Below are positions 1 through 54,200 of a stretch of DNA of 64,000 nucleotides, piece by piece. The DNA is from Bugula neritina. Its lineage: Eukaryota; Animalia; Bryozoa. Made by a program: the position numbers and the translations under genes. The stretch's first letter is position 1. Every line of letters starts with the position of its first letter. The notes beneath the pieces were generated by a model. That model was not told where the DNA came from and did not search any database. It was given only the letters and a program-made list of their open reading frames with translations. The stretch lies in the NCBI GenBank assembly GCA_964035545.1, contig OZ037769.1, positions 5,995,929 to 6,059,928 of the forward strand, written 5' to 3'.

Positions 1-1514
1 GCAAATATATACAAGGTGGGGGAACAGTAGTTTCTGATAAAACAAGATTAACACAACATTGGATAGCTTCTGTAAACATAAGCTGAGTGCAAATACGATA
101 ACAGCAACCTATTGACAACAGGTTGAGTAGCTCCTAGACAGCCAGTCTTACTTTACATCAAGTTTATATCAGGTTGTGGTCCAAACTAAGGTATAAGCAA
201 GGATGGGTCAGTGAACGTAAGCTGGGTGTATAGAATATTGAGATAACTTTAAGGCTGGTTAAGCTAACAACAATATCAAACTTTTTCTTACTTTGACCAA
301 TTATCACAAACCCATAGGCCTAAACAACATCTGTGCAAATATAAAACAAAGTGTGTAAAATATGGTAAACTTTCAGGCTGCATGTGTGTTCTGTGCTTTA
401 CAGTTTCAATTTCACTGAAAAATTATTCCCCAGCTGGAGATAACCAAAAATTGTTACTATAAATATTCCTTGTTACCAAGACAGAAAAGTTAGTATTTAT
501 ATAAGGGTAAGATTTTTATAGTAAAATAACAGCGCCCAGAGGCGCTACCATATCACGTATCAGATCCTCAACTGTGATAGGAAATTACTGCACAGCTTGA
601 CATCGATATGATCCTTAAGAGATGAGATTAGTCTTTGAGCAAATCACATCTTTCAATTTAATTTCTTGACATATCATAGCAAAAAGACAACTTTGTTCTG
701 CATCACTAAAAGCTGACTCGGGTGTCATGTTTCACTTTGTCTCATGGCAAGTTGTTCAACAATTATACAGCGAAACCCAGTTCTAAATAGTAGGTTTTAA
801 AAAAGAGATACGGCAATTAAAAAAGTCACTTTTCAGCAATATTTGAATGAGAGTACAGACTGATAGCCAAACTAATAACTGGTCTAGTGTGAACTCACTG
901 ACAAACAAAAAGTTCAAATCTAAATACAAGCCTGAAGCACTGTCTAACCAAAGCCAATAGTGTATTAAAACTTACTCAGACAGTTTTAAATATTTTTAAT
1001 TAAATTTTGCTAACAATTTGCATAAATCAAGCATAATAACACCTCTGCCTATTAAATCAATCACTCTTGCAGCAAACCTCTATGTACATTTATCTCTAGA
1101 TGGTAATTTACAAGCAACATACAAAATTATTTGGCACATTTACCAAGTGAAAATATTCATTAATTTGGAGTTAGCTCTGGAAATAGAAATCAAACAAATA
1201 GTTGATAAAGTAGTTCCATAGCCTAAACAACGACTTTCAACACATTTGAAAATACAGGAAAATGTGGCAGCTGAAGGAATAATAATTTTTATCTAAATTA
1301 AAAACACGCTGAAAGCATCGCTAGTAAGTAACGCCCCAGGCAAGCGGCTAAAAGGCTTCTCATCCGATAGAAAAGTCTATTTACTTAATTCATCAGCTGG
1401 CTGAGTAGTAAGTGGCGGAGTTAATGAGGATGTATATATCAACTCTTAAACCCTCAAGACACAGTGGTTTTTTGGCCTTAAACAAATTACTCCCAATTTC
1501 AGGCACATCTGCCT

Positions 1515-4500
1515 CTAAGTGTACTCAGTACAGGATGCTGTAACACTGAAGATCATGTCAACTGAAGGAGAACACTGAAGCTGTATGAAAGAAATAGGGG
1601 CCAATATTGCATGCTTCAGCACCTGCGTCTTAAAAGCACCTATTAGAATTTTTTTAGTTTTAGGAGTTATCTTAACCACATCTCAGCCTATGGTAGGTCT
1701 TCTGTATCTTAAAGTTTGCAGTAAGATATTTTTTACAATGTTTTTCATTAAAACTGTTTGTATAAATCTCTATAAAAATAATATTTTATTTAGTAATTTC
1801 ATAGAAAGGTTTTATAAAATTCCCAACTTTATAACTCTGCTTTTTACAATTAAGATTGTTTTGAAATACAAACATATTACTCACCGTTCTTTCATCTATT
1901 TCTGCATACACATGCTTTTCAGTTGACGGCACTGATGCAGAATATCCGTCGTGTGTTGGGTTTACGTTACGAGAAGACAACTTTGGGCTAGCTGACTTGC
2001 TCGCTCTACTCCTGTAATAAATTACTCAAGGTTATCATAACTTGTAATCCTCAAATAACAAAATGTTTCACGTTTGGAGTCAAAGAAATTTCAGTTAAGT
2101 CAATAGAAACCATCAAAAACCACCACAAACAATGTGTGTTCCATGTGGTTGACTTGGTGTGGTTGATTTACAGCGTGTGAGTAACCTATTCATGTGGCTT
2201 CGACTTCAACATCAATCACTGGATTTGATGTAACTGATTAAAATAAACTCAGTTGGTGAAATGATGAGCATAGTTAAGATTTTGGAGGCTGTTGGATTGA
2301 AATTGTGGTTACATCAAAGAGAAATAATGATGATAAGACCAAAATATGCTGCAGATATTTCTATCAATAAATGAAATCTCATTAAGAAGTAGGTAAGTGG
2401 AATTCAGTTTTCAGTCTTTAGGGTCATTTTGAGGATTTCTAGAGCTAATTACATCCATCCCTCCCACCTTCCTTCAGTAATAAAATAGTATTTTATTTAG
2501 TTGAGTATTATGAATGCGACAGGTTGAAGGTTGAAGTATTTATATAATAGAAAATTATTATGCAACTTTAATTAAATTCCAGATTCAACAACAAGTTTGA
2601 AGTGCAATTCGGCTGGGTGAGAATTGAGAGGAAACACTGATCAAACATAGCTTCACAAATTCCCACTAAACTTACACGAAAATTTAAAGCTGTTACCATT
2701 TTAATGTTTAAGAAATCTTTTCAATTTATAATTGAAAATATAATGATAATTAATTTTATACGCTGCACCCAAAACACTTAAACATCAAGTTGAGAAATAG
2801 TGAATTGATCTCAAGCCAACATTACGTCTGAAATAGTGCTTCGTGGCATTACAATACAAATTATAATGTATGATATATATTAAACGTAACAATTTTCAGT
2901 TTCAAGTGCGCTTTGCTAAGATTATACAGCCTCAAGCAAACTATACAGTTGCGAGTATTTGCTTAGCAGAATTTAAATGTTTATCCAAATTTGATAACTG
3001 AATCCCACAAAGTTTATCAAATGTAAGCATAAATTTTATCAAAAAGCAAATAAGCAATTATTCTACTTACGCTGGTGCAGCTTGCCTTCTCTGCCAGCAG
3101 AAGACACCCATGACTATCACCACTATGACTATGACTGTCGCTGAAACAATCGCTGCGATAATGATTACATCAGAGCTGACAGGGGGTTGAGTATTTGTAT
3201 TAGGATTGCTTCCACTTGGTTGACCCGCATCGGCACCACCTCCATTTACAATCAATATGGCTTCCGTAGTTGTTGTCTGGGATGCCGGGAGAGGCATGAC
3301 TGGCTCTGTGGTGGGAGGTACAGTAGTGGTGGTCTGTTCACACTCGCAAGGGGCATTGCTGGTGTCACATTGCGATGTCACAGGGTTGAAAGTTTCTCCG
3401 TCACCGCAGGGGCAGTGGAGGCATGAGTTACCAGTACATTCGAAATAGTTCTGACAATTCCTCACGTCTATGACATTCTTCACCTCCCCTTGTGGTATTG
3501 GAAACGACACTTCTGTGCCACATGATACTAAAATATGAACACATAATGGGCACATTAGATGGAAGTTAAGATTAGAACTAATAAGTTTGTTAAAATCTAA
3601 ATATATAATATATTATTTCATAGCTTTTTCTGAGTGCAGTTGAATCGGGTTGCAAACAACTCAGAGATTGCTGTATAGGATATCAGAGGGGCCAATCATG
3701 CATTTAATATTCACTTTGTTGTCTGTACAAGTGAAAAGTGCTGCAAGCAATTCTGCTCTTTTGCAATTTCGTCAGCTATGCTATAGAAAGCAGTATTTAG
3801 AATGTACTCTTCAAATTCATGGAATTGTTTCTAACTGAACCAAAGCACTAGTTGCTGGAGCTGGTTTCAAGTCTGATTGCACAAAATAGTTGATGCAAAA
3901 ATTAACGAAGCTTGACAAAAATGATTTATCTTCTCCCAGCAAATATGTTCCTAATCTCCACTCTTTATCCCATCACAGTGGTGTGCTTAATTTGTGTAAT
4001 TCACTCTGATATGAAGTTATTACAGCTGTTTTTCTTGAGAACATATACCTAGGCTTCGGATATTTTATTTTAAATCCCAACATTATATGACGCATTAAAT
4101 AGTCTTATCAATTTCTATTATTTCCTGTACTATTCAAGTTCTATTGTTTTCTTGACACTAACCAACAAGTGTTTGCTTCTTCACACTCTACCGAGAAAGC
4201 AGTACTGTCTCAACAAAGAAAGCTACCACAGAGTTCCTTCAAAAATGCCAACTGATACTACTATTACCTCTTCACCATATATAATCCTCTCTTGTTATTT
4301 CTATCACATACTTACTACTAGAATATGTGTTATGACAATTTCTAGGCTGACTATTCGTTATTTACTTTCCCTTGCATTGAAGATGTTCAATTGAATTAAA
4401 AGTTTTGTTATTTCACTTGATCCTGCCATGATAAAGCAAGGATTTCTAAAGTTTCTGTTACAATTTAACAATGACTAAGTGACTGATTTTATCAAAGTGA

Positions 4501-7500
4501 TAAAGAATAGTGTAAGCATGTTTGACATATGCAAACATTACTGTTTGTAAACCAGTAACTGCCATTAATCACTTATCAACATAAGGAACAAAATATTTGG
4601 GCATTTTCAAATTGATGTTAAACAGGTATAGAATTAGGACAATGATCAATTATGATAAAATCTACATAATCTAGTGCATTTGTATGACTGCTAAGTGAAT
4701 ATTATGCTCTTGCAATGTCTACCCTATATCTATAGTTCAGTAAATAGACACTTGAGAGCTCCATACTTTTCTTTATAACTTATGAAAATATTGATACAGC
4801 AGGGATTTACTGCAACTCACAGCTGTATTATATACATAATATTATGTTTTATGGCTTACTCCCTGCCACAACCACCTGCATTCACTGACTCTCTAATCTC
4901 AAGTGCCTACAGACTTATATTTTATCTTTTAGTGGCCACATTTGTTTATAGGAGTATATTTGACAAACTGATCGTTATTCTTGGAAACAGTTGTTAACAG
5001 CTATAGGTAACTGCAACAGTTGAGTGAGTTAACAAGCACATGCTGGTTTGGGTTGGTAAATGTTAGATGAACTATAATTAGCAAATTAAAATGATTACCT
5101 ATAGAAGTAAGGACAAGTCAATGCCATCTGTGAAAATAACAAGTCGTACATTTGATTATATTGCAGGTACAGCTTTTATTATCTATGCAGTTGATGTATA
5201 TACAGATTATTCTAATTTAACCAATTTATGGTGGCCTTGTTTAGTTTTGAGGTTTTCTTCTGGGATTAGAGTATTATATATTCACTAGTACAACACATGA
5301 CTGCTTGCTTTTAATTTGTTTATAACATCATTTACTAATTAATCTAATAATTACCACACAGTGTTTGTTACTTGTAACTAGAGCTTCTATGTATTGTAAT
5401 TAACAGTTTAATGAAAGGTATTATATTTATGCACAGTTGCTGCTCCAATTCTACACCTTATGCGCTGCTTTCAAGCAGGTTTGTGTGAATTCTCATCACA
5501 TCTAATCTTCAACAGTAACATAGCCTCTACATTGTGTTACAACAGGCTTATTGTTTCCTGCCACTTCTTAGGTAAATATCATTTTAAAAGTTATTTATCC
5601 ATTGATTAATGCAGTTTTTATATATATTATCTCCGGAATGAAGCCCTTATTTCTCCTAAACTGTTGAGTGGTTTTGTTGTTTTTCTTAGCCGCTCACTTA
5701 AAGAAATTAGCAGAGGTATTAATGGATTCTTTTGAATTGCTAGCATCAAATTACTTGTCTCAATGGTTAAGGTAATAATTTTAGTAGTGGCAGATCAAAC
5801 AGCTAATACTTTTCAACTGCAAGTGGCTTCTTTAAAATGTACATTAGCAGACCACATAGAATTTTTAGTCATCCAACTAATTTCAACTACTCACTGGTCC
5901 ATTAATGCCAAAAATTGCAAAAAAAAGTAGTTTTACTTGTCTATGGGTCTAGGCTGATGCTAAAAGGTGTTAATCTTTACAACTTGTCTAGATGAAGCTG
6001 ATCTACTCAACTCAACAAAGGGCTCTAATCCACTTAGCCATTTAATCCAGTGTGCAAACAATTTAAACTCATATTTCTTAGTAGGTAAGAACCCGATGGC
6101 AGTTCTAAAAATTGCCTTACAAGAGGAGGTAACTGCCAATCTTATAAAATTATTGTTTCTCAATTTTTTAAAGCTACTTAAAAATGTGAAACTTACTTTC
6201 AAGTTTTAATTAAATAAGCTGGAATATAAATTTCAGATCGACTTTCAATTTCCAATTCAAACTATTTTCTATACAAGATTAAATCATTCCATACTTTGTG
6301 TGCTACTATATACTTGGGTGTTATATTATAACAGCATGCAGCAATAGCAGTAATGTTTTAAACATTTAATTCGATATTGTACGTGATAAATTATTTTGGT
6401 TAGCAAATTACAATAATTATCGATTTACTTCACAATACTGAAATATTTTATAACATTTCAAACACGTCTAATTATCCTTAGCCAGGGATGGTAAGTTTAT
6501 TGAATCTGGCAGCTAATTTCCTTTAGGAATCAGCATGTAATCCCTGTACAAACATATGCTGCAGATAAGAAATAAAGCTTTCAGAAAATTAGCAATCACT
6601 GGACAAGGAATTCATGGCAGACTTATCATTGAGACAACTAATTAAATGTGCCAGCATACGAGATAATTGAATAAACTGTCTAACTACACGCTAGCGCAGA
6701 AAGTGTTAGCAAATCTACAAAGATAAAAGGCTGGCAGAGTGTTAAAAGAGCCATCGCAAAGTTGAGCAAGCTGTAATATTTTTCATTTCAATTAGGATGC
6801 TATTGAAGTGGCAATGGAGATGCAATTAATTTGTGGAGAGAAGATTTACCAGACTGTGATATTGATTACCAGTTGGTAAAGCATATGCTTGTCAACCAAG
6901 GCTTATGTTGAATTGAATTATTCTCAATGTCAATATTGTTATTTTTCCTTTGATATCCACTAACCAAAGTGTTTTTGTACTAATTTTATCTGACACAGTG
7001 AAATGGAGTTCAAATGCTCATGGAATAACCAGTGACATCAGCTATCCAATTGTGTAGAGGCAGTTATATCACTCTCACTGCAGGAACTCATGACTATTAT
7101 GAATTCAGTCATAATTTTCCCTTTCAGATGCACTTGAAGTCAAACATATTTCAAATCAACGACCAGAATCAAGCTAAGGCTGATGTATTTTATGCCAAAA
7201 TAACAAATGTTAAAACTAAAACATCTTTCAGAGTAGAGGTTAGAAATGATCATAGATTAACTGTTATATTCCAACTTTCAATCAACACATTTCAACTGAA
7301 TATGGTTAGAAAATAATAACAAATCTTTTTGACTTGAAAATTTTTGTATAAATAAGCTCAAGAGTCAAAAAACTAGTTTGAGTGTTGAAAGCAAAAGGCA
7401 ATCTCTAACTTTTAACGAGGAAAAGTCAAGGAGCTTATTTTGATTTTGTTTATTAAACCATGCCAAAAGTCAGGTATTGTAGGTAGTAAGTTTAGGTCTG

Positions 7501-36200: not shown

Positions 36201-39200
36201 AATTACAAAAACTTTTATGCAAAATGTTTATTCCTTAAACTTTACCTGATAGCTAACGATTCCTGTCTTTTTCTGATCTTCAACAACAAAGGCTCGAGCA
36301 TAGCTGTCAATCATCTTCTGATCGACTAGTCTATACGCTGCCAGATAATCGATGCCGGCATTCTGCTCCGGCTCCAAAGGGTATTGTAGGAGGGCAGACT
36401 CCTCAATTAGCTGCTTCATGTATCCCAGTAACTCGTTACCACCCTTCTTCATCAGCACGTTTACTCGTCGCTTACCGGGCATCACTGCATGCAGAAGACA
36501 ATGCTAGATGCAGACGTTACTAGATGCAGACGTTACTAGATGCAGACGCTACTAGATGCAGACGGCACCAGCACACACAAATGACATCAGTGCATGCGTA
36601 TATAATGCAGAAAAACCACCTCATCATTGTTGGTGAAAATAAAAAAGAGCCTCAATGCTAACAAGTTGGAGCTACACAGACCATTATATTCTAACCAACT
36701 CAAGTTACCATCTTTCTGTCATTCTAGTGTGAGCCCTTTACGCACATTATACTAATGGATCAACCCTCTAAGGTAGACATAGAAGCACCGATACATTTAC
36801 TAAGTAGATGTTCTTTTTTAAAGAGAAGATATGCAGTATGGTGAGTGAGAGTTTATTCAGTATGTTTAAGTGGTTTCGGATCATCTTACATAATGCTAGT
36901 ATAGATATCTTTACAGGGACAGCATTGCAATATTCAGCTGACAGATTAAATTTTAACATAAACCCAGGAGTTATCTTCTATTATCCAGAATAACTAAACC
37001 TCTAAAGGAACAGATATAGCTGTATACGTCTGTTCAGTTGCTGGTGAGGAATATTTGTAGTACACAGTTAGATATACAAACATTCAACTTAAGTTAATAA
37101 ACAACACTGACAGACATTTAAGTTCCCAAATGTTATCAGTTGTTGAAAATACAACCTCCAAGTAGTTCTTAGCCAGTTCTTTCCAAGTAAGAGTTATACA
37201 ACTTGAAAAAACTGATTGCATCATCAGCCATTTTTAGCACATTTAAGCCAGAGTTAAATAAACATATTCAGTCACTTTGAACCCTTTGGGATATAGTTAA
37301 GCTTTATTAACTATAATACATCCAGAACCTGCTCACGGAATGCCTGAGTGACTGGTGATAATGATAAGCTTCTCAGAGTAACTTACGTGTAGAAGTGTCA
37401 AGGTCACTATCTCCTGCCAGTTCGTCACTGTCCATGTCACTAGCATAATCACGGGCGTTCTTCAGTCCAACCTAACAGTACAACAAATATTATATATGGC
37501 AGTACAACAAATATTAATATTATATATATAATACAACAAATATTATATATGGCAATACAACAAATATCAATATTATATATATAATACAACAAATATTATA
37601 TATGGCAATACAACAAATATTATATTATATATCAAAACCCAATAAATTTATATATTATATAACCCATTAAATAAAAAAGAAAAAATACAAATATAACATA
37701 TACCAAGTACAACATACCAATATCATAACATAAATATCGCAGGCCAATATCCCCTAACAAATACTATACGCACAAAATATAAATATATATATATATCATA
37801 TTATATTGTATTGTGCAAAAGCTACAAAAAATTCTCTGAACTAAATCAAAAGACACATTTCTTGACCTGAAGTAGCTATCTGAAATTTTTTTATACAAAA
37901 CTTCCTTATGAAAAGCTTGGTGTAATAAGATATAACTTTACTTCAAAGTTTCAAACAAAAGAACTCAGTAAAAACCTGTGAAAAGGCTTCAAGGGTTTCA
38001 TTTTGCAAATTCTCTCACAAATGTCACTAGTAAGTTTCAGCAAGAATTTAAACTAAATCCTTCAAGTACTTTACAGCAAACACACCTTTTGGCCTCCTTC
38101 CATAATTCTCAAGTCGTCTCCGAACTTCTGCTTTAGAGCTCTAGCGATATCCTGTTTAGACATGTTCGGGTCAATGCCGAGTGCCTTCAGGTCTTCTTTG
38201 GACAGCTTGTTTATGTCTATTTTAGTCTTGCCAGCTCGAAGTTTTAGTTTCCCATCAGCACCCTGCAAGTATGAAATTGTACATCAAGTTCTGTCTACAA
38301 ATCTCACAGAGTACAATAAAGTTGTTGCATAATGTATAATTGCAATTAGAAACTGCGTTTTCAAGTAAATAAAAATTGCAAATCTCAATAAGAAACATAC
38401 TAATTATCTGATGTACTAGCAACCATTTAAGAAAATATTTAACTCCAATCTGCTATAAAATTAGAACTTTATTTTTAAAAATCTCAATACACCAGCAGCT
38501 GGTAAAAGGGAAACATCCACAACTATCACATGTCTTATACACAAGTTCAAAAATATAATTTCATATACATGAACTTTATCGTATTAATAATATTAAACTA
38601 AGAAAATGCCAGAATAATTTTCATATATTTGATTTTAAAACCTTGTATTGGCAGATATGACAATACAAATAGGGAACACAACTCTAGAAGTCTTTTTAGC
38701 TGTGCGCTCATAACTTACGGTATAAATAATACTTGCTTACTCATTATTTATATTTTATATAAACAACATAAAGAAACACCTTCTCAAAGTAGTTGCCGTC
38801 ATCGTTGTCAAATTTGTCTCTGGTGACATGTTTCTTAGTCTTAAGACCCTCTTTAGTTTTGGTCTTGCCGATGACGTTGCCATGTTCATCATAAGTGTAC
38901 TCGTACTCCGAGCCCGACTCCCCGTCGTGGTACTTCTTTTTCTTCTTCTTGATACGTCCTTTCTCATCGTATTCCTACAAAGAATTGTCTGCACATGATT
39001 CAACACATTATAGAAAAGTAATTTGAATATTTTTATCACACAGCTTTATTATAATATATACAAGTTACATAATGATACTGTTGAACCAAATACCACTATT
39101 ATCATGAGCCTGTATTCCACATAATTATTGATCACTACAAATAAGAAAAATAGGTTTATGGAGCACTGCTACCTTAAAGAGTATTCAACTAGTAACGCAA

Positions 39201-42200
39201 ACAGATAGAGGAAATGTGTATACTTCCAGATGTGTACACTACTGACTGTGAGATGGGTTCAGCTAAAGAATCCCAGACACACTTCAGTATTTAAAAAATC
39301 CACACAAATCTTAGCTATTATCTACATTCTACAGCCTGTTTGATGGTTTTATGCTCAAACAATTTTGCTTTATAATTAATTTTGTTCAAACATATCTTGA
39401 AAAGATTTAGAATTTCTGCGATGGCTCACCTGCCATTTCTAATAGCTCTAAAACCCGTAGTATTATAAAATAGTAAATATTGCTAACTTTCATTGCCATT
39501 CTTAGCTGCTGCAAAACACAGTTTAATCACTGGGCTGGTTTCAAATTTTAAACTTTGAACTTACTTGCTTCCTATATAAATTTTACAGATTGAAACAGCA
39601 GCACAACTGTACACAAGAAGTTAATTTGGAATATAAATGATGAATAATAATGATTGGATGTTTTTCCATGCAAATTGTTTTACTGTTTTAGTGACACCCC
39701 TGACCAGCATTGTCTGACTATGTAGACAGTAGTGTCTATAGCAACATAAGCTTAATATAACTACAGTTGATACAGAAGTATACGTACAATCTCATACTCA
39801 TAGTCACTCTCCACAATCTCATCCACTCCTTTTCGCAGTTTCTTTTTCCGTTTTCCATCCACACCAATGAATGATTCACCTGGGGCAAGAAAGGTTTACA
39901 AGAAGCTAGAGAATAATTCCAGGAGGAAAATTATATAAAATGCAGTACTCCCTTCGTATTATACTAAGTTACAGGTCCCAAAACCTCAATCCATGATGCA
40001 TTAGAATACCAGATTCAACTCATGGTAACATTGAATTTGGCGATTTTGTCTCTATACACACATACATAAGCCACAGAATGGGGGTTCAAGTCTTTTTCGT
40101 GACTAGTAAAATTGCGTGAGAAATGGATCAGTGTGTTGCATTTACAAGAAGCAGTGAACACAATGTGATTGAGGAGAGGTTTATACACCTACCACTGTCA
40201 CTGCTTTCATAGCCACCACCTCCTTTACCTTTCTTCCCACCTTTACCTCCTTTATGTCTACCCTTGGTCCCATATCTTTCTTCTACAGCAATATAATGAC
40301 ATAGTGTAATACAGAAATCAGTTCATAAATTCAGTTCTAGCTGTAGCTTGTAAGTTATAGCTGTGATATATCAAATGATTCACTAAATTATGGCAATATT
40401 TCGAGTTTATTGCTTCAAATTGCTCACATGAAACCATCAAAATTATTTCCTTGTGTCAAATACACCACAAAATAGTAGGAAACATTGAGATTTATTAGTT
40501 ATCTTAATTTCAGGGTTATGACTAATGTAGCAATAGTTAAGTTGCTATTGCTAGCATTCCAAGTAAATGACATGCAGGCATGTTCATTCCATGTTGGAAT
40601 TCCAAGCACCACTTGGGAAATTATGGGTTACATTTTACACATCATGATGTAATGATTATTGCAACACTAGATAGATTTAACCATGCTGGTTGAAAAACAT
40701 ATTTCTTATTCTATTAGGCTTTCTTGGCAAATTTCATATAAATAACCAACATTATTTTGCTATTAATTAAAATGTATAAGCATGTTTAAAAACTTTTCTT
40801 GGAATTTGAAATAATTATAAGTTTCATTGAATATGTTTATAAAACAGCATTGATACCTTCTACAGAAAGTGTTTGGGAATTTTATAAGAAAGTTTCTAAA
40901 AGCAGGGAAATTCCATGGTGAAACATGAGTGAAAAGTAGATTTTTCCAAGAGAGGTACTATAAAGAGACTGAGTTAATTGAGACAGAATCATATGAGGTC
41001 TTGTAGGCTGTAACACTAAGCTGTGGAATAGAGTGGGACCACAGTATCGCATGCATATCGTGAGTATAACACAGGTATACATGCAGGTAGCTGTACATGA
41101 TGCCTGATGAAGGGTGCAGCTTGAAATCAGGTATGAAATCTTAACAACTCAAGTTGCAAACTTCTTACAGTAATCTACAATATTTGCTGAGAAATTGAGG
41201 TGGGATTTTAGACGCAAGTGTTTATATACTGCAATTCGATGACATTATTGTTATGTTGTAACTCCATATATGTTTGCATTGATTGAGATATAATATAATG
41301 TTATTAATTATAATAATGTGGTTACATGTAAACCTCAATGCAAAGTTGTGAGTAAGATTTCAGCAAAACACAACTCATTATTTGCAGCAACCACAAAAAT
41401 AGGAGAATTAATGACAGAGGTAATTTTCTCAAAAAGAATCTCAAAAAATTATTTCTTACAAAATAAACTTTGAATACTACTAATAATGTTGAAGTAACTT
41501 TTGTTGAGTAAAATTGAGTTAAGCTTCAATATTCATTCATTAAAAGCTAGCTGGTTTGCTAACTTGTACATTTAAAAACAACATTTACACTGCAACCTTG
41601 ATGGAGTATTATAGATGCTGAGCCATAGCCTACTTAATCACATCAAATTATTGCAACACACCAGGGTATTGGTCACGTGGTAGTATAGCTTTATATTACG
41701 TGGCACACAACGCTTTCATCTCCGCATATGCTGGGAAATTCCAACATAAATACATGAGTTATCAAAGCAATTGGAAAACCAGTTTGTAATGAAAAATCTG
41801 CAACTTGACAACTATGTAATATATGTACATTTGCCTTGCCTTCCTGTAAACTCCTCAAGTATACTCATAAATACTGGCAGGTAGATATAGATATTGAAAT
41901 GCTGACGAAACAACACATGACTAAATGTTGCCAACATTTAGCAGCTTATATATACACAACACTGATATTAGTTTAACCTCAACAAAGTCTGTAAAATACA
42001 TAAAGATTTAACTTTAAACCTTGATTTCTCGTAAATCATAGTACATGTAGTTGAAATATTTTCCTATAGGACTTCTATATTATAAAACTTATGCAAGTAT
42101 AGAGCAAATATCCCTGTGAGAAACCCCTGACAAAAAGGTCTTTTTTGTTAGATCAGGCTAAGGACTAATTAATATGTGGCACATGAGCAATTATGATTGG

Positions 42201-45200
42201 ATGCTCTTCCTAGCATCACCAATGGCCTTTACCAGAGATAGAACCCATGACTTCGTGTTTACTAACTCCTTAAAAATACAAGCTGCCGAGCTGAAACTGC
42301 AGGTGGCAGCCAGTGGCAGTAGACCAGCTGACTAGTAGCTCAATATTAGGTAGTTTATGACGGCCACCCTTATAATAATATACGAGTAATATTAATAAAC
42401 ATCTTTGGGTGGCAGTGCTAAAAGAATAAAAACTTAAAGAACTATTGAGTAATAAATATAATCATAAAGTACGACAGCTGCTATCTATAAAGTAGGCTTA
42501 TATATACATCTACATTATATATACGTTATACAATATATATGTGCATGTGTGTAGCATCGTAGTAGCTTTAGTATCATAGTTGCCTGCAGTTGTAACACAA
42601 GGCATTTGCATTTCTAAGAATTTAAGTGGATGTGATAGGCCAACACTAATGATAGTGGAAGTGTTTCGCAATAGTGGAAAATCCAAATAGATTTTTCCAC
42701 AATTGCATTAATTTTCCCAAATGATAAGTAGCACATTTTATGGGCTACAAATTTTGGAACTCGGAGTAGGTTTTCCAACATGGAGGTATATAAGGAGTGG
42801 ATCAGCAATAACACATCATTGCCCTTACTACTACCTGACAGAAAGCTAAAAGGAAGCTGATAAGAGAGCGTAGAGAAAGTGAGTAAGCCTACATTATAAC
42901 ACCGGGCTACTAAAATTGCTCTACTTAACATAACTGTGAATAAATAATTAATAATACTATAATTATTAAATTTTATTTTCTAAGAATTAATTTAGCAACA
43001 TTTATTAGAAAAGAATTGATAGAATGCCTATAGAAAGATGTTTACAGTTTTATATTAATAAATTATAAATATTATTCATGATACTATAAAATGTTTTAGC
43101 GATGCTTTTACTAGTGAAAAAAACAATCAGTTTTAAAGCATTTGGCTTACAGTAATGTGCTTTAATTTTTTTAATTATACAAAATATAAACTTTAACTAA
43201 AATTTACTATATGCTAAAAGCTTAATTAAATGGAAAAATAAATGCTATCTTTTCGTACACATCTGCTTATATTTATAAATTATTTAAAATATTTTAATAT
43301 ATTCATTATTTGAATTATTTATAGTGATACAATATTTATATGTAGTAATGCCACTAAAATCACCTGATAGTAACCTAGTATGAAGCAATTTTCACTACTT
43401 TGACTATCATAATAAGCTTATTCAAATACTAAAAGACCAAACTATGATGCTAATGAAATGTTCCACGTTACAGAAATGATCAAGGTTTAAATTTATTGAA
43501 ATAAACTTACTCTCAATATGTTATAGAAATGGCCGGTGCTAACAGGGGTATTGCATTTAACGATTACGAGGATCACCCAGATTTTCTCGGACCTTCCAAG
43601 ATGAAAAAATCTAAGAAAATTGAAGGGCCTCACTTTGATAGTGGTTGCTATTATAAGCCAGAGTAAATATATTATATTGAATTTATTATTCTGATTCTGC
43701 ATAAATATATGTTTTTTATAAAGTGCGCAAAATGAGAAATAGGTCAAGTCAGCTGGCCTGATAATGTTCCATACACTGACTAATATAAGCAGTATTCTAC
43801 CATCTACAGCCTCATATTACCAGGTAGTCCAGCGCATCTGATGAAACCTGAGCTAAGCTTCTAAATATAGTAATACACACATACTGCAGAATATGCTGGC
43901 AATTTTCTAATCAACTATTTGCATATTTTTTGGCAAAAATTAGAGTTGTTTCCAGCCAAATGCGCACATAAGTTTAACTCGCATATCTATATGTTTAGTC
44001 AAGTCTTGGTAAAGTATGGGCAGTAAAATCATAGTATTGTCAGCTAAATACATTGTAATTTTTTCTGAGGTAATACATATATACATATTAAGTTCTCAAT
44101 GATTGCCGATGCCCTTAAGACTGTATGTTAGTGAGGAAAACAGCACCGTTTTAAGAAAACTTTAAAATGTTTATCCACCTTGTAAAGTATACTAGCATCA
44201 TTCAAAAATCACTGAAAAATCTATCAAGCCATAAATGTCCTGTTGTTAGTTTTACCGCCCTTAATAAGTTTTTCAGATAAAACTTAGAATTGCTTGACAG
44301 GTTTAAGACACAACCACACTGAGTAAGTGATAGACCTTCTGCTGAATCAACTCAATGTGAAAGTAACCAAAATAACAGATTTCTATCTGAGAGTGCTAAG
44401 ATCTGGTTTAACCAGTCTCTATATGAAAGCAGTGCGCTTGAAAAATTAGAGAAATAAAAACACTTTATACAAAAAATCATGATACAACTTTTCTAAATAA
44501 TTAGTATTGTTTAGAAATAGAAAAGGCCATGAACATTATAATGTTCTCTCATAACTTTCTATTTCAGGCATTATGCTAATGGCGAGTTCTACTTGGTGAG
44601 GAGATGTCTGTGTAAGAAATTTAATGAAGAAGAAGAACGCCACTTCAACGACAATTGCCATTACAAACGCTACAAAGATGTCTACAGCACAGAAATTTAT
44701 CTAATGCTGAAATGTTACTGTAAAGAGTCGGAGAGTCAGCTAGCGTGACAAATCTTATGGTATTCAGATGAAGTGTTACATTATAATAAATATATATTAA
44801 ACTTCATTTCCACTAAATATTTATGTAAAATAGTTTTACAACCGTACCAATATATTTATGTAATAAAAAATATAGATGAAACCTGATTAAAATCTCTTCA
44901 GCTAAGTTATAAGTTGCTAGCTCCTGCACGCTGATGTATTTAAAGCATTCTGTCGATTTTAGAATGCTGTTAAAACAAAGCCATTTCAACTACACAGTCA
45001 CAGCAGACACAACTTTTCTCTTTTTTGATACAAACAGTTGACTACTAGAGGTTATACAAGGCACAAATGATACTTATTATAATATCATCATAGTTTTTAT
45101 AACTAAGAAATAGTCGTACCTCCTGATTCATAATCCGACTCGTCTCCATCTTTCTTAATAATTTTCTTGACTCTTTTGCCTCCCCAGCTAAAACAAGTGC

Positions 45201-48200
45201 AAACTCTGTGTCAGCATGTTTTAAGGGTTATAAAAGGCCTGGCAGCTATAATAGGGAAAGCTTGCATATTCCAATACATCAGTAGTCAGCAGGGAATAAT
45301 ATCTCACATGAAATAGCTCTGCAGTGTATGAATCTTTTTGCATGAAAAAACTTTGATAGTTAATAATTGAGACAAAATATTTAAATAAAATTGATGTAAA
45401 ACCACAAGTTGGCAAAATGCCATTTCATTAAAACAGATAAGATAATACAAGTATTTTAATTCTTATACATTTGTGGCAGTTGTATCACAAGGGGCAATGT
45501 TTACAGTACAGTGTGCTATCACTAACTAAGTGTGGCCAACAATGCTATGATACTTCCATTATCTATTTCTACATTGTTAGAAAATCTCTGACACACCTTA
45601 TCTAAGTGGTATTAAGATACATATATATCTTAGCTATCCTCTAACGACTGCAAGAGGGTGGTATTCGGAAAAAACTTTGTTTTATAATATATTTTGTGCT
45701 CATGCTGATGACAATTCAACTTGAAACTTGCAATCCAGCTCAGCAATTTAACTCTGTGTTGCAGTAGATAAGAATAACACGTCATAAAAATCAGAAATAA
45801 TTACTGTTAGTTTTACAATACAACAGATCAGAAATCCCAAATCGATTCAAAACATGTTTGCACAAAATTGATTATAACACAACATTGGTTGAGCACACAA
45901 CCCTCAAAAAGGCTGTAGATGATAGCTAAGATATATATGAATATTTAAATAATGCATAAATAAAGTGTAATTGAAACACAACTTTTAAAAATATAAAATG
46001 CCACGTTCTTTCAAAACAAACCCTAGTTGCTATAGACACTCACTCATCATGGCCTGGGCCCAGACTCCTGTTGTCAGCCTTGCCCTTCTTGGTTAGCCCT
46101 CGTTCTGAGCCCTTGTCATAAGTTACCATGCTCTTGTACTTCTGTTTGAAGCCCTCAGGGTCCGCCTCGTACTCGTCCGAGTCCCATTCCATGCCCTCAG
46201 CTAAGGCGCGTTCTTTTCTCAACTGCTTCTTATTTCTACAAAACACAATGGAAAAATGTTAGTCCACAAATATACATAAAAATTAACTCCAGATTATGAA
46301 TAAATGTTGAATTTGTGCAGTCAGAAAGCATTTTTAAACTGCAGCCTCTTTTTGGATCTAGTTGCTTCTGTATTGCAAATTACAAGGACGGAAATATTCT
46401 CACTTCTCATGTTTTGCCATGATCTCATCAAACTTGTCGCCATATTTCTCACGTCTGCGCTGTTCTCGAGCTGCCTTTCTCTGAGCCTTCTTAGCCAAAT
46501 ATTCTTCTCTCTCCTGCTCTGTCATGTTTTCTAAATCTGGTTCATCTTCAGTGTCTGTTGAGTTATCGCTATAGCAACGAATTAACAAGATGTCAACATA
46601 GCAACACATAAACAAGTTATCACTACAGCAACACATAAGCAAGTTATTGCTATAACAACACATAGACAAGTCATCTCAATGTAATAAACTGAAATTTGTC
46701 GCAATAGTGACTATTCAAAGCGATTTCTTTAGGAGCACACTAAATGCTATTAGAGTTCAAAAAAATTACCTGATACAATCAGTTGGAAGTAAAAAGTCTA
46801 ATTTCCAATCCAAAGACTAACTAAATGTTGTTAACATCACTGTTACTGCCAGTTTGACCAGTTAGAAAGGCTATTACATATTGTTTATACAGTGGATATC
46901 TGCATTATATGTTCAATTCACCTGAATCCACCTTTGAAGTGGTCTCTTGTTTTACCAAGCTTCTTTCTTTCCTTTCCATCTTTACCCTTTCTTCTCCCCA
47001 ATGCACCAGCTTTTGAAGGCTTGGCCCTGACAACTCTGTTACCATTTGAGTCAATGAAACTCTCCATGGAGTCAGAATCTTCTGCAATCACAGTTGAAAT
47101 TGCAGATCTATCTCAAATTGTGGAATAAATAATAAATTTTAAATGTACAGTTATGCAATCAACAGCTTTTAAAAGGAATGAGCAGTGCTTTTTTCGCTGC
47201 TACAACATATAGCTTCGTACTACATTAGCATGTGACATAGAGGAACTGTTCGGACCTGAATGATACATTTCAACAGCACCATGTCCAATCACCTTCCCGT
47301 CAGCGTCTCGAATTCTCTTCTTTCGAACTCTACGCCGAGTGCCTCCTGCGCTGACATCACTGTGATAACTAAATGATATCATAATACAGTGTAATGACAT
47401 CATAACACAGTGTTTGACGTCATAATACAGTGTATAACATCATAATGCAGTGTAATGACATCATAACACAGTGTAATGGCATCATAACACAGTGTATGAC
47501 GTCATAATACAGTGTGATAGCATCATAATACAGTGTAATGACATCATAATACAGTGTATGACGTCATAATATAGTGTGATGGCATCATAATACAGCGTAA
47601 TCATGTATAATATTTTGTAATGACATAATATGGGGTAATGACATAATAATACAGTGTGATGACATCATAATATAGCAGCTATAATACCACAACTACCAAT
47701 AAAAAAAACTCATGTAAGTTTATAGTTCCTATCCCTGTGAGAAAACCCCTGATGAAAAGATTTTTTGTTAAATCGAGCTAAGGACTTATTCCTCTATGTG
47801 GCAAAGAAGCAATTATGACTGAATGCTTTTCCAAACATCACCGATGGTCTCTGCTGGGTTTTGAACCCATAACTTCAGGTTTACTAAGCCAAACACTTAA
47901 CCCCTAGACCACGGCTACTCCCTACTAACTACCAATAACATATAATCTAATGCCATAATCACACTACAGTAACTACCAATAAGATACAGTGTACTATCAT
48001 GAGTCATGACATTTTAATACCAATATATAAATTCTAAAAGTTACCTATACTCGCTGTCGCTGCCGTGCACCTTTTTGCCCTTTTTAGCTCTTTCCTTAGC
48101 TTTGTGTTTCTTGTCGGCCTTTCTCATAATCAGACTATCATCACTATGATATTCCTCATCAGCACCATACGTACCGTCAGCATTTCGTTTCTTCCTTCTA

Positions 48201-51200: not shown

Positions 51201-54200
51201 AGTCTTCTCATCTATAACCACTTCATATACCACACCATCATCTCCCACCAGTCTTTTGCCTGGCAAACAGAATGTGCAAAAAAAGTATACAATTTGTCAA
51301 GATAGTCAAAAGCTGATCACTAAATCAAAGAGAATGCAAACAAAGTATTCCACAGAGCCATAAGCTGCTGAGAAACGGCATCTCAAACAGGAAGTAGAGT
51401 CACTGACCCACGGCTGTGTTCTGAATAATCTCGTCAGCATCCGAATCTTCGTCGGCATACACGGTGCTGGCCTTCTCCCAGCTCTCTAGCACCTCCCCCT
51501 TCTCCAGCTTTATGAACTTCCTGAGAGCCTCTTTGTCACCACCGGCTTTCTCGAACTCTGCGTACTCTTCCTCCGTCATCATAATCGTCTTCTCCACCTT
51601 TGATAATAAACAATCAGTTACAAACCTCATTAAACCTCACTTTATTTATTATACCACAAATGATAGTTAAATATTAGTCACAACGATATCTGTCAGAAAC
51701 TTATTAATAGATACTCTATTTTGTCATCAATAAGAGATTGAGTTGTTTTTTTTTTTTAATTAATACTGCTAAAAAAATTGAGTAAATTTATTAGTAAATT
51801 ATATTATATTCATTGTCAAAAGGAATAACTATTTACCTAATATGCTTTTAAACTTTCAAACGTCTAAATATGGTTTTTAAACATAAAAATGCTGAATAAA
51901 ACTTCAACACAATACCATTGTGTTCCCAAGAGGTACTGTGAGACCCAATGGTAACATCAACTCACCATCCTTCCACTTTTAGTCCTAATCATTGTTTTCA
52001 ACACCTTCATGGGTTTGGGGGGAGGTGGCTTTTCCCCTGGTTTATGAGTCTTTTTTACTTTCTGCCAACTCTCAACCTTTTCATCTCTGCCCATGTACTT
52101 CTGAAGTATCTATAACAGATGTAATAGCACATAGTGTCAGAATAGCATTATAATAGTTCATGAAATTGTCTCTACAGTACAAGCACAAATAAGCGCACTT
52201 GCCAAAGCAAGCCCATTCCAGAAAATAGCTTATTAACATGGCAAACACTGGCAACACAGCTCATTCTATTACAGTACTCTTTCCGTATCTCACTCTAATA
52301 AACAATACAATGTAATATATGCATCACGAATAAAACTTAATGTGTCTAAGCGTAAATAGATAAATTATACCAAAGTTGTTATATTTATACTAAACCTTAA
52401 AGACAGAAGTATATACATACTGTGGTTGGGTCTCCCCCAGCCTGAGTGATTCTCTGAAGTTCTTCATATTCCTCTTTACTCACTAGAATTGTCTTCTCTA
52501 TCATTCTACCACTTTTAGTCCTCACCATGGTCTTTATCTACAGTAGAATAGAGAATACGTCTGTGACACTTTTACTATATAGATAGCTGAGCTGTGACAC
52601 TTTTACTATATAGGGAGTTGAGCTGTGACACTTTTACTATATAGATAGTTGAACTGTGACACTTTTACTATATAGATAGCTGAGCTGTGACACTTTTACT
52701 ATATAGGGAGTTGAGCTGTGACACTTTTACTATATAGATAGTTGAACTGTGACACTTTTACTATATAGATAGCTGAGCTGTGACACTTTTACTATATAGA
52801 TAGCTGAGCTGTGACACTTTTACTATATAGGGAGTTGAGCTGTGACACTTTTACTATATAGATAGTTGAACTGTGACACTTTTACTATATAGATAGCTGA
52901 ACTGTGACACTTTTACTATATAGATAGTTGAACTGTGACACTTTTACTATATAGGGAGTTGAACTGTGACGCTTTTACTATACGGGGAGTTGAATTGTGA
53001 CTTCTGTATGCCACACAAAAAATGTCACTTTTATGGCATCTGATATAATATCAGATACCTAGGCACAAACCAATATCCATGAATTAGCTCACAGATATAT
53101 AACACCGCAGCAGCAATAACTGCTACAGATTTTACTTTCAGCATAATATATCTACACCTGCAAAAACCTAGGTAAATTGATCTCATTTGTAAGTAAAACT
53201 AAATATATTGAAAATAAACTTATCTATTAAGGAGTAATATCATCTCGAAGAACCATAAAATTATATTGTACATATCTAGAATTGAAAAGAAAAATAATCT
53301 TGAGTCCAGAGAAAACACACATATTTCTCTGCTGATGTGTTTTCATAACTATAGGAATTGTTTTAATGTATCATCAAAACATCTTAAAATAGTTAAAGTA
53401 AGGATTACTCTCAAAAATGGTAACAGTAAGGGCGTTGGTCAAATGTTCCAACCACAATACCTGTCTGACTTCTGCCTCTCCCCAACCATCAATCTTCTCA
53501 CCATCTTCAGGCTTTACATACTTGTTCAGTACTTTCATCACTTCCTCTGTATTCATGTTGCCAGCTTTAATCTTGTCGTAATCACTCTTACTTACATACA
53601 CCATCTTTTCCTTTAGCCTGCCACTCTTAGTACGTACATACGTCTTTATCATCTTCACCTACACACATGTACCACGGGTTACATCAAGTGATGGCACTGG
53701 TAAATAGGTTGTGAAGCTAGGAAACTTAATTGCTAATGCAGTAAGTATTTAAGGTCAAAATAACATATACAAATGCAAATACAATGCATTATATAAGCAA
53801 GAATTTTTATTCATTTCATCAGCTTAAATAGAAACAACCTTAGCACCTGTAAAATATTTAAATAAAACTCAGATTTCCATGTTTCAATTAGCAGAAAATT
53901 TAAAAATTTACCATTTTACAAAAAACTTCGATGATGAATTTTGGCTGTAAGCTTATAATAGGTCAAAATAGCATATTTTAAAATAAATTAGTCCCTTAAG
54001 AGTGTTGTGATTCAGTAATAAGAGTTACCTCCTCTTTGTCCCAAGACTCGAGGTTTCCAGCCTCTTCCTTGGTGAGATATTTTTTGAGAATATCGGAAGC
54101 CTTGCCACCTCCTTTAGTAAACTTCTCATAATCCTCAGCTGATAGGAACACAACTCTTTCAATTATTTTGCCACTTTTAGTTCGGATGTATGTTTTCACT

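Follow-up and report, generated by a model that had tools for sequence, protein, structure and literature searches.

The TAZ domains of CBP and p300 are helical and carry several HCCC zinc sites per domain, each built from one histidine and three cysteines. Proteins of the CDGSH/NEET group, such as mitoNEET and CISD3/MiNT, have 3Cys-1His ligand sets in which two of the cysteines form a C-x-C pair, and CISD3 places two such units in one small chain. The CSL domain (DPH3/KTI11, PF05207) is a small, β-rich metal-binding domain in which a strand is followed by C-x-C-G. Here we describe a gene of the bryozoan Bugula neritina whose predicted product resembles each of these systems in part. The gene occupies positions 42787–44870 on the + strand of a 64,000-nucleotide stretch of DNA (hereafter the window; contig OZ037769.1, positions 5,995,929 to 6,059,928, assembly GCA_964035545.1), and is predicted to encode a 104-residue protein with two tandem His/Cys units. 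It has in common with TAZ domains the set of one histidine and three cysteines per site and the presence of more than one site per domain; unlike the helical TAZ fold, however, the window domain is predicted to be all-β, and we found no match in either sequence or fold. With CDGSH/NEET proteins it shares the 3Cys-1His composition, the C-x-C pair and, in the case of CISD3, the two units in a small chain, but the order of its ligands is reversed, the CDGSH signature is missing, and neither Pfam nor fold comparison gave a match. With CSL it shares small size, β-rich character and a C-x-C after a strand, whereas the one site of CSL consists of four cysteines, two of them from a C-x-x-C further downstream.

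The locus reads as a complete and compact transcription unit, in which a TATA/initiator promoter is followed by one short non-coding and two coding exons and then by a poly(A) signal; this exon structure is supported by paralogues and by an orthologue, both described below. The TATA box, TATATAA (42787–42793), lies 31 nt 5′ of the A (42818) in an initiator-like TCATTG and is identical in a sibling assembly of the same nominal species; at the same relative place the paralogues carry TATAAAAG. Exon 1 (42818–42878) is predicted to be non-coding, with an inferred start, and ends at the donor AAA/GTGAGTAAG (AAA/GTGAGT, 42878/42879). Intron 1 (42879–43526), which interrupts the 5′ untranslated region (UTR), closes with the acceptor TATAG/AAATG (43526/43527), 2 nt before the start codon. 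Exon 2 (43527–43662) contains the ATG at 43529 and codes for the N-terminus, predicted to be disordered, and for the first half of module 1 (E-x-x-H-x4-C-x-Y). Intron 2 (43663–44567) is in phase 2 and splits module 1, with donor GA/GTAAAT (43662/43663) and acceptor TTTCAG/G (44567/44568). The coding part of exon 3 (44568–44748) supplies the second half of module 1 (YL-x-R-x-C-x-C), an acidic linker, all of module 2 and the TGA stop (44746–44748). The 3′ UTR (44749–44870) follows, with AATAAA at 44785–44790 and again at 44862–44867. Joined in phase 2, the coding exons give 44 codons from exon 2, one split codon and 59 codons from exon 3, or 104 residues; the pieces translate to MAGANRG...GPHFDSGCYYKP(E) and HYANGEFYLVRRCLCKK...LKCYCKESESQLA. 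An earlier interpretation made from the letters of this stretch (the sequence-only reading) had proposed the same unit and quoted two repeats, both of which are contained in these translations. Every coordinate that we checked for its TATA box at −31, initiator, donors, acceptors and AATAAA agrees with the sequence, and its two phase-matched coding exons were recovered by translation and by the identical junction in the sibling-assembly orthologue. It had also remarked that the gene is absent from the open reading frame (ORF) track, as is indeed the case, because in the bacterial-style ORF list of the window the coding exons appear merely as short ORFs of 45 and 51 residues.

A search with exon 3 returned one database protein, the hypothetical protein EB796_018719 [Bugula neritina] (P0001, 109 residues). 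This protein contains ...GPHFNSGCYYKPEHYANGEFYLVRRCLC..., and its junction, ..YYKPE/HYANGEF.., is the same splice junction as that of the window gene. EB796_018719 was predicted by AUGUSTUS with transcriptome hints (PMC7576161), and the model spans the coding sequence only. It is 78% identical to the window gene over exon 3 and occupies a colinear locus: its contig, from the earlier B. neritina draft GCA_010799875.2 (the sibling assembly), aligns with 33.6–54.8 kb of the window at 82–92% nucleotide identity. The two proteins differ mainly in the acidic linker, where there is a 5-residue indel, and at the N-terminus; none of the motif His/Cys positions has changed. The sequence-only reading had put forward the ratio of non-synonymous to synonymous substitution rates (dN/dS) among orthologues as a check, and the result supports a real gene: summed exon by exon, with the linker indel left out, dN/dS is 0.17 (12.5 synonymous changes over 53.5 sites and 10.5 non-synonymous changes over 231.5 sites; binomial p = 3e-4). 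Raw conservation, by contrast, is uninformative, as nucleotide identity to the sibling assembly is 89–91% in the exons and 91% in the introns. Although the two genomes are about 9% diverged, neither the reading frame nor either splice site is disrupted in them, and the TATA box and distal AATAAA are preserved as well. The proximal AATAAA reads AATGAA in the sibling, and the 3′ UTR up to the distal signal is 95.9% identical, against about 91% for the introns. From these comparisons, the window very probably holds a real, intact and selectively constrained protein-coding gene on the + strand. It is less hidden than had been claimed: the orthologue is already in GenBank and UniProt as a hypothetical protein, paralogues are annotated in the draft, and homologues in Watersipora exist as RefSeq models.

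The Darwin Tree of Life assembly of B. neritina comprises 216.00 Mb in 320 scaffolds plus the mitochondrion, and the species is a complex of cryptic species (PMC11480708). The two assemblies, both labelled Bugula neritina, show about 9% intron divergence and up to 18% in some blocks (window 33668–54824), a level that fits an origin from different cryptic species of the complex.

The encoded protein is organised around the unit pattern E-x-x-H-x4(-9)-C-x-[YFW], a β-hairpin and [LV]-x-[RK]-x-C-x-C. Two such units occur in tandem in a protein of roughly 100 residues, and both are present in the window protein. Comparison of the unit 1 and unit 2 profiles gave an hhalign probability of 96% (E 4.1e-9, 33 columns), which bears out the internal duplication that the sequence-only reading had described. 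The first copy does, as had been noted there, span the splice junction: the phase-2 intron sits between C-x-Y and L-x-R-x-C-x-C of unit 1 (43662/44568), and is found at the same position in all ten fully modelled paralogues, with GTAAGT/GTGAGT donors and matching acceptors. In one Watersipora gene, too, an intron falls at the corresponding position. In P0001 numbering, C40, C58, C60, H75, C80, C99 and C101 are invariant across Bugula, Watersipora, amphioxus and a member from the European Nucleotide Archive (ENA), and the first histidine is likewise invariant in the module-1 alignment once variable spacing is allowed. The family alignment of exon 3 (A2) has the invariant series R, C, C, H, C, Y, D, C, C, and two Watersipora members contain only two histidines in the entire protein. 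The members are hydrophilic, with grand average of hydropathy (GRAVY) values of −0.6 to −1.4, and a hydrophobic N-terminus was seen in none of ten inspected members from four sources. Judged from this inspection and from GRAVY, the proteins appear to have no signal peptide, as proposed at the outset.

By profile searches of the window's own assembly (216,009,554 bases, 321 sequences), in which the window lies on C5, we found 14–18 paralogous copies of the gene. Six lie in tandem at C2:26.26–26.28 Mb, three at C6:14.53 Mb and two at C5:3.67 Mb, with others on C7 and C2; paralogous copies of exon 2 were also detected. On window exon 3 the profiles gave E-values of 1e-35 (self) and 5.7e-23 (family profile). 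Paralogues are 30–40% identical to one another, and exon-3 dN/dS between neighbouring tandem paralogues ranges from 0.28 to 0.66. An AG acceptor is located 0–8 nt 5′ of the ATG in nine of the ten modelled paralogues, and in most of them, 440–1000 bp 5′ of the ATG, a strong GTAAGT/GTGAGT donor comes 80–150 nt after a TATA[AT]A box. This shared TATA-to-donor layout suggests that the non-coding first exon is a trait of the family. Within the C2 array (26261864–26276344, six copies) and the C6 array (14531985–14536163, three copies), the copies are spaced 2–3 kb apart, and every one comes with a separate TATA box and a short first exon that is non-coding; in the C6 array the promoter and first exon are nearly identical from copy to copy.

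Outside this genome the family is small. For protein searches the two coding exons were used separately, with the orthologue P0001 as the full-length stand-in for the joined 104-residue window protein. The exon-3 profile (A2) gave only 18 matches among 1.84 billion representative proteins. These comprise B. neritina hypothetical proteins, Watersipora subatra RefSeq models named ‘uncharacterized’, a ‘TRIM5-like’ model, the Branchiostoma floridae protein C3YCW5 (104 residues) and fragments from JGI, ENA and Logan. A profile built from bryozoan members alone aligned to the amphioxus protein with an hhalign probability of 97% (E 4e-11) and to the ENA protein P0017 with a probability of 97% (E 1.5e-10), covering both units in each case. 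EB796_018719, its paralogues (such as EB796_001956/001957/001959/011763/006740) and the Watersipora XP_ models are alike in having about 100–110 residues, two H...C...C-x-C units and the intron in unit 1, and none of them has a name, a Pfam domain or a described function. A literature search on the locus-tag prefix found nothing relevant.

Two relatives depart from this plan. The W. subatra ‘TRIM5-like’ model (P0016, 376 residues) has a RING, a B-box and a coiled coil, with the two-unit domain at its C-terminus; its gene extends over 27.5 kb (OY755167.1, 10001–37581 of the retrieved stretch), and the last three exons encode the domain, with an extra intron between the units. P0017 has both units in 82 residues, without an intron. 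It is encoded on a 5.3-kb contig (ENA ERZ13706889 NODE_7641, 1–5352) of densely packed intronless ORFs. Its neighbours there encode a histone H3-like protein, in which the N-terminal tail is long, a protein with ankyrin repeats, a DUF5662 protein and a Cys-rich secreted product. In the Atlas, the clusters nearest to the DUF5662 protein carry viral labels, mostly of tailed-phage taxa. The contig looks as if it came either from a large DNA virus or from a eukaryote that is very compact. IMG/VR viral contigs scanned with P0017 and the Watersipora sub-alignment yielded no viral relatives. A metagenome scan added one more member, eukaryote-like and with an intron between the units; a second candidate from that scan was bacterial and was rejected as a false positive. 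So far, the matches point to a small family with members in bryozoans and amphioxus and on a single virus-like contig from a metagenome.

We could not assign the domain to a known family, in agreement with the sequence-only reading: Pfam, the sequences of solved structures, Foldseek and an Atlas fold search were all without a match. Across 13 members, Pfam returned only sub-threshold matches (SPK, DUF2729, DUF6219, WSC and CSL), each in one of the 13, and we rejected these scattered matches as chance. The SPK domain (PF04435) reached 15.9 bits (E 0.015), against a gathering cut-off of 22.1 bits, in window exon 3 only. The CSL zinc finger (PF05207) matched a single member at E 1.5, and no family member has a C-x-x-C. 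For CDGSH/NEET (PF09360) there was no Pfam match even at E 10, and the signature C-x-C-x2-[ST]-x3-P-x-C-D-G-[SAT]-H is absent from the alignments. A secreted cysteine-rich peptide is likewise disfavoured, given that no signal peptide is apparent and the N-termini of ten members are hydrophilic. The family profile found no match to a solved structure among PDB sequences even at E 10. Searches with structures gave nothing at E ≤ 0.001 (Foldseek against PDB), nothing significant (the VIA wide structure search), and template modelling (TM) scores of 0.44 or less (the Atlas shape search); an ESM Atlas search by features gave no usable match, and the Atlas's own model was poor.

A mixed alignment (A1) of P0001 and exon pieces placed the exon 2 pieces on repeat 2 and was not used as a profile. 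By AlphaFold2 without an alignment, the predicted local distance difference test (pLDDT) was 52, and that model was not used; with a 15-sequence family alignment, pLDDT rose to 68.9 with a predicted TM score (pTM) of 0.56, and the core reached a pLDDT of 84–87. In this model, predicted strands 28–35, 41–47, 51–57, 73–75, 81–86 and 93–99 flank a short linker helix, and residues 1–23 are disordered. The hairpins 41–47/51–57 and 81–86/93–99 put C40 beside C58/C60 and C80 beside C99/C101, respectively, and the histidine five residues before the first cysteine of a unit is predicted to lie at the end of the preceding strand. The domain, with a generic small β-sandwich look in the model, is treated here as undescribed, and it is the domain family, rather than the gene, that had escaped notice.

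On the strength of these comparisons, we propose the following account. The protein of about 104 residues, hydrophilic and without a signal peptide, would comprise some 30 disordered residues at its N-terminus and an all-β domain of about 70 residues, which would derive from a unit of about 30 residues duplicated in tandem. In each unit the hairpin would place the C-x-C close to the H...C loop. One structural metal ion, most likely Zn2+, would be chelated per unit through one histidine and three cysteines, and the two units would pack as a small β-sandwich. Because the histidine and the three cysteines fall at one tip of each unit in the predicted secondary structure, the sites would be formed within units and not by a cross-brace. 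Reduced, metal-bound cysteines are favoured over disulfides because the members are hydrophilic and lack a signal-like N-terminus. With the conserved His/Cys residues and the predicted hairpins as evidence, we lean slightly towards structural zinc, with two ions per chain. In the weakest step of the account, the domain would serve as a binding or recognition module and not as an enzyme. This role is suggested by its small size, the fast divergence outside the ligand scaffold, the tandem expansion and the C-terminal place of the domain in the TRIM-like model; TRIM proteins carry a target-binding domain at the matching position. Taken as a whole, the combination of a nested, constrained gene, a two-unit His/Cys protein, metal chelation and a binding module is the explanation we consider fairly likely.

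Several points weigh against it. That the unit is transcribed, that it is spliced at these junctions and that it has a non-coding exon are predictions from sequence and comparison. The AlphaFold2 model, with the scores given above, is of middling confidence overall. The TRIM fusion is one automated gene model and may be chimeric. On the opposite strand, the draft annotation of the sibling has two separate genes, of 767 and 528 residues, and no nesting. Lastly, the six cysteines could form three disulfides, or the 3Cys-1His sets could hold an Fe-S cluster.

If the 3Cys-1His sets bound [2Fe-2S] in the manner of CDGSH/NEET proteins, the product would be a small redox or cluster-transfer protein. 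The composition of the units, three cysteines and one histidine with a C-x-C pair, and their number, two per chain as in CISD3/MiNT, would suit such a role. No Pfam match to zf-CDGSH or to any Fe-S family was found, however, the order H...C...C-x-C is the reverse of that in CDGSH, the CDGSH signature residues are missing and there is no structural match, and we regard an Fe-S protein as unlikely. We hold an extracytosolic, disulfide-bonded product to be improbable as well. It would be, for example, a defence or adhesive peptide with three disulfides, exported without a classical signal peptide, in which the histidines are otherwise used. The even number of conserved cysteines (six) is compatible with this, and tandem-array expansion with fast divergence, here down to 30–40% identity between paralogues, is a pattern common in secreted defence peptides; yet a hydrophobic N-terminus was found in 0/10 inspected members, both histidines are as conserved as the cysteines, and in one gene model the domain forms part of a RING/B-box protein, which is intracellular.

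It is quite improbable that this copy, duplicated from a real family, goes untranscribed or is decaying, and that its frame and signals persist only because the duplication was recent. The evidence for the gene is comparative, its exons are no more similar to those of the sibling species than are its introns, and it is a lone copy, apart from the tandem arrays. Against decay stand the intact frame, splice sites, TATA box and distal AATAAA in both of the diverged genomes, the dN/dS of 0.17 with its significant synonymous excess, the identity of all His/Cys positions between the two assemblies and a 3′ UTR that is better conserved than the introns. That the domain is instead a very diverged member of a described zinc-finger or β-sandwich family, of the CSL/DPH3 type or the alpha-crystallin/CS sandwich, we consider very improbable.

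Should both His-Cys3 units of the constrained gene's product bind metal, the family would represent a small metal-binding domain that has yet to be described and that lacks both a Pfam entry and a structural relative. The family sits in a poorly studied phylum, Bryozoa, with outliers in amphioxus and on a possibly viral contig, and at about 70 residues the domain is a compact target for structure determination. Bugula is known for its bryostatin-producing symbiont, and the family offers a marker for lineage-specific gene expansion in this genus. A far-reaching and improbable extension would take the doubled His-Cys3 arrangement as a new metal-binding fold that owes its patchy distribution to exchange between large DNA viruses and marine animals. 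On this view the module would have expanded in bryozoans to serve recognition in conflicts of the host with viruses or symbionts, and would once have been captured to form the target-binding part of an E3 ligase of the TRIM type. The idea of exchange derives from the patchy distribution itself, which takes in cheilostome bryozoans, amphioxus and a dense intronless contig with histone H3-like, ankyrin and virus-associated DUF5662 genes. The value of the locus at present is that of a well-supported lead to a lineage-restricted, probably metal-binding domain, and not of a discovery.

The sequence-only reading had placed the gene antisense in an intron (40283–45119) of a large minus-strand gene, and this placement stands, since the flanking host exons are in frame and change mainly by synonymous substitution. 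The coding exon upstream of the host intron (45120–45187, minus strand; ..WGGKRVKKIIKKDGDESDYESG) has a phase-1 donor at 45119 and differs from the sibling by three synonymous changes and one conservative change. The coding exon downstream (40193–40282, minus strand; EERYGTKGRHKGGKGGKKGKGGGGYESSDS) follows the acceptor TGTAG/ at 40283 and shows three synonymous and two conservative changes. Together, the six synonymous and three conservative changes in these small exons indicate that they are coding. Exon 45120–45187 continues the frame of a minus-strand exon that ends ...GGCCATGATGA/GTGAGT, with its donor at 46043, and is itself continued in frame by exon 40193–40282 (EERYGTKGRHKGG...YESSDS). 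As the donor at 45119 must reach its acceptor past the small gene, the small gene would lie inside the host intron. Nested genes of this kind, small, with their own promoter and on the opposite strand inside a host intron, are found in other animals, and the arrangement itself is not unusual; here, exon phase together with the pattern of substitutions gives good grounds to infer it. The 767-residue draft model stops at a TGA that overlaps the GTGAGT donor (window 46040–46050, minus strand; sibling contig 12652). This stop looks like read-through of a splice site, and the public annotation of the sibling probably truncates the host gene. The two further in-frame, constrained exons suggest that the 767- and 528-residue models are parts of one gene.

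Most of the host protein consists of Lys/Arg/Glu-rich repeats and ‘KTYIRTKSGK...’ units that matched no recognised family. One host exon (46400–46669, minus strand) has a near-threshold Pfam match to DUF7167, at 23.0 bits against a cut-off of 24.4. The region of the minus-strand gene also contains short tandem repeat arrays at 36496–36564, 47454–47620 and 52623–52940, whose copy number differs between the two assemblies, as seen from laddered blastn matches.

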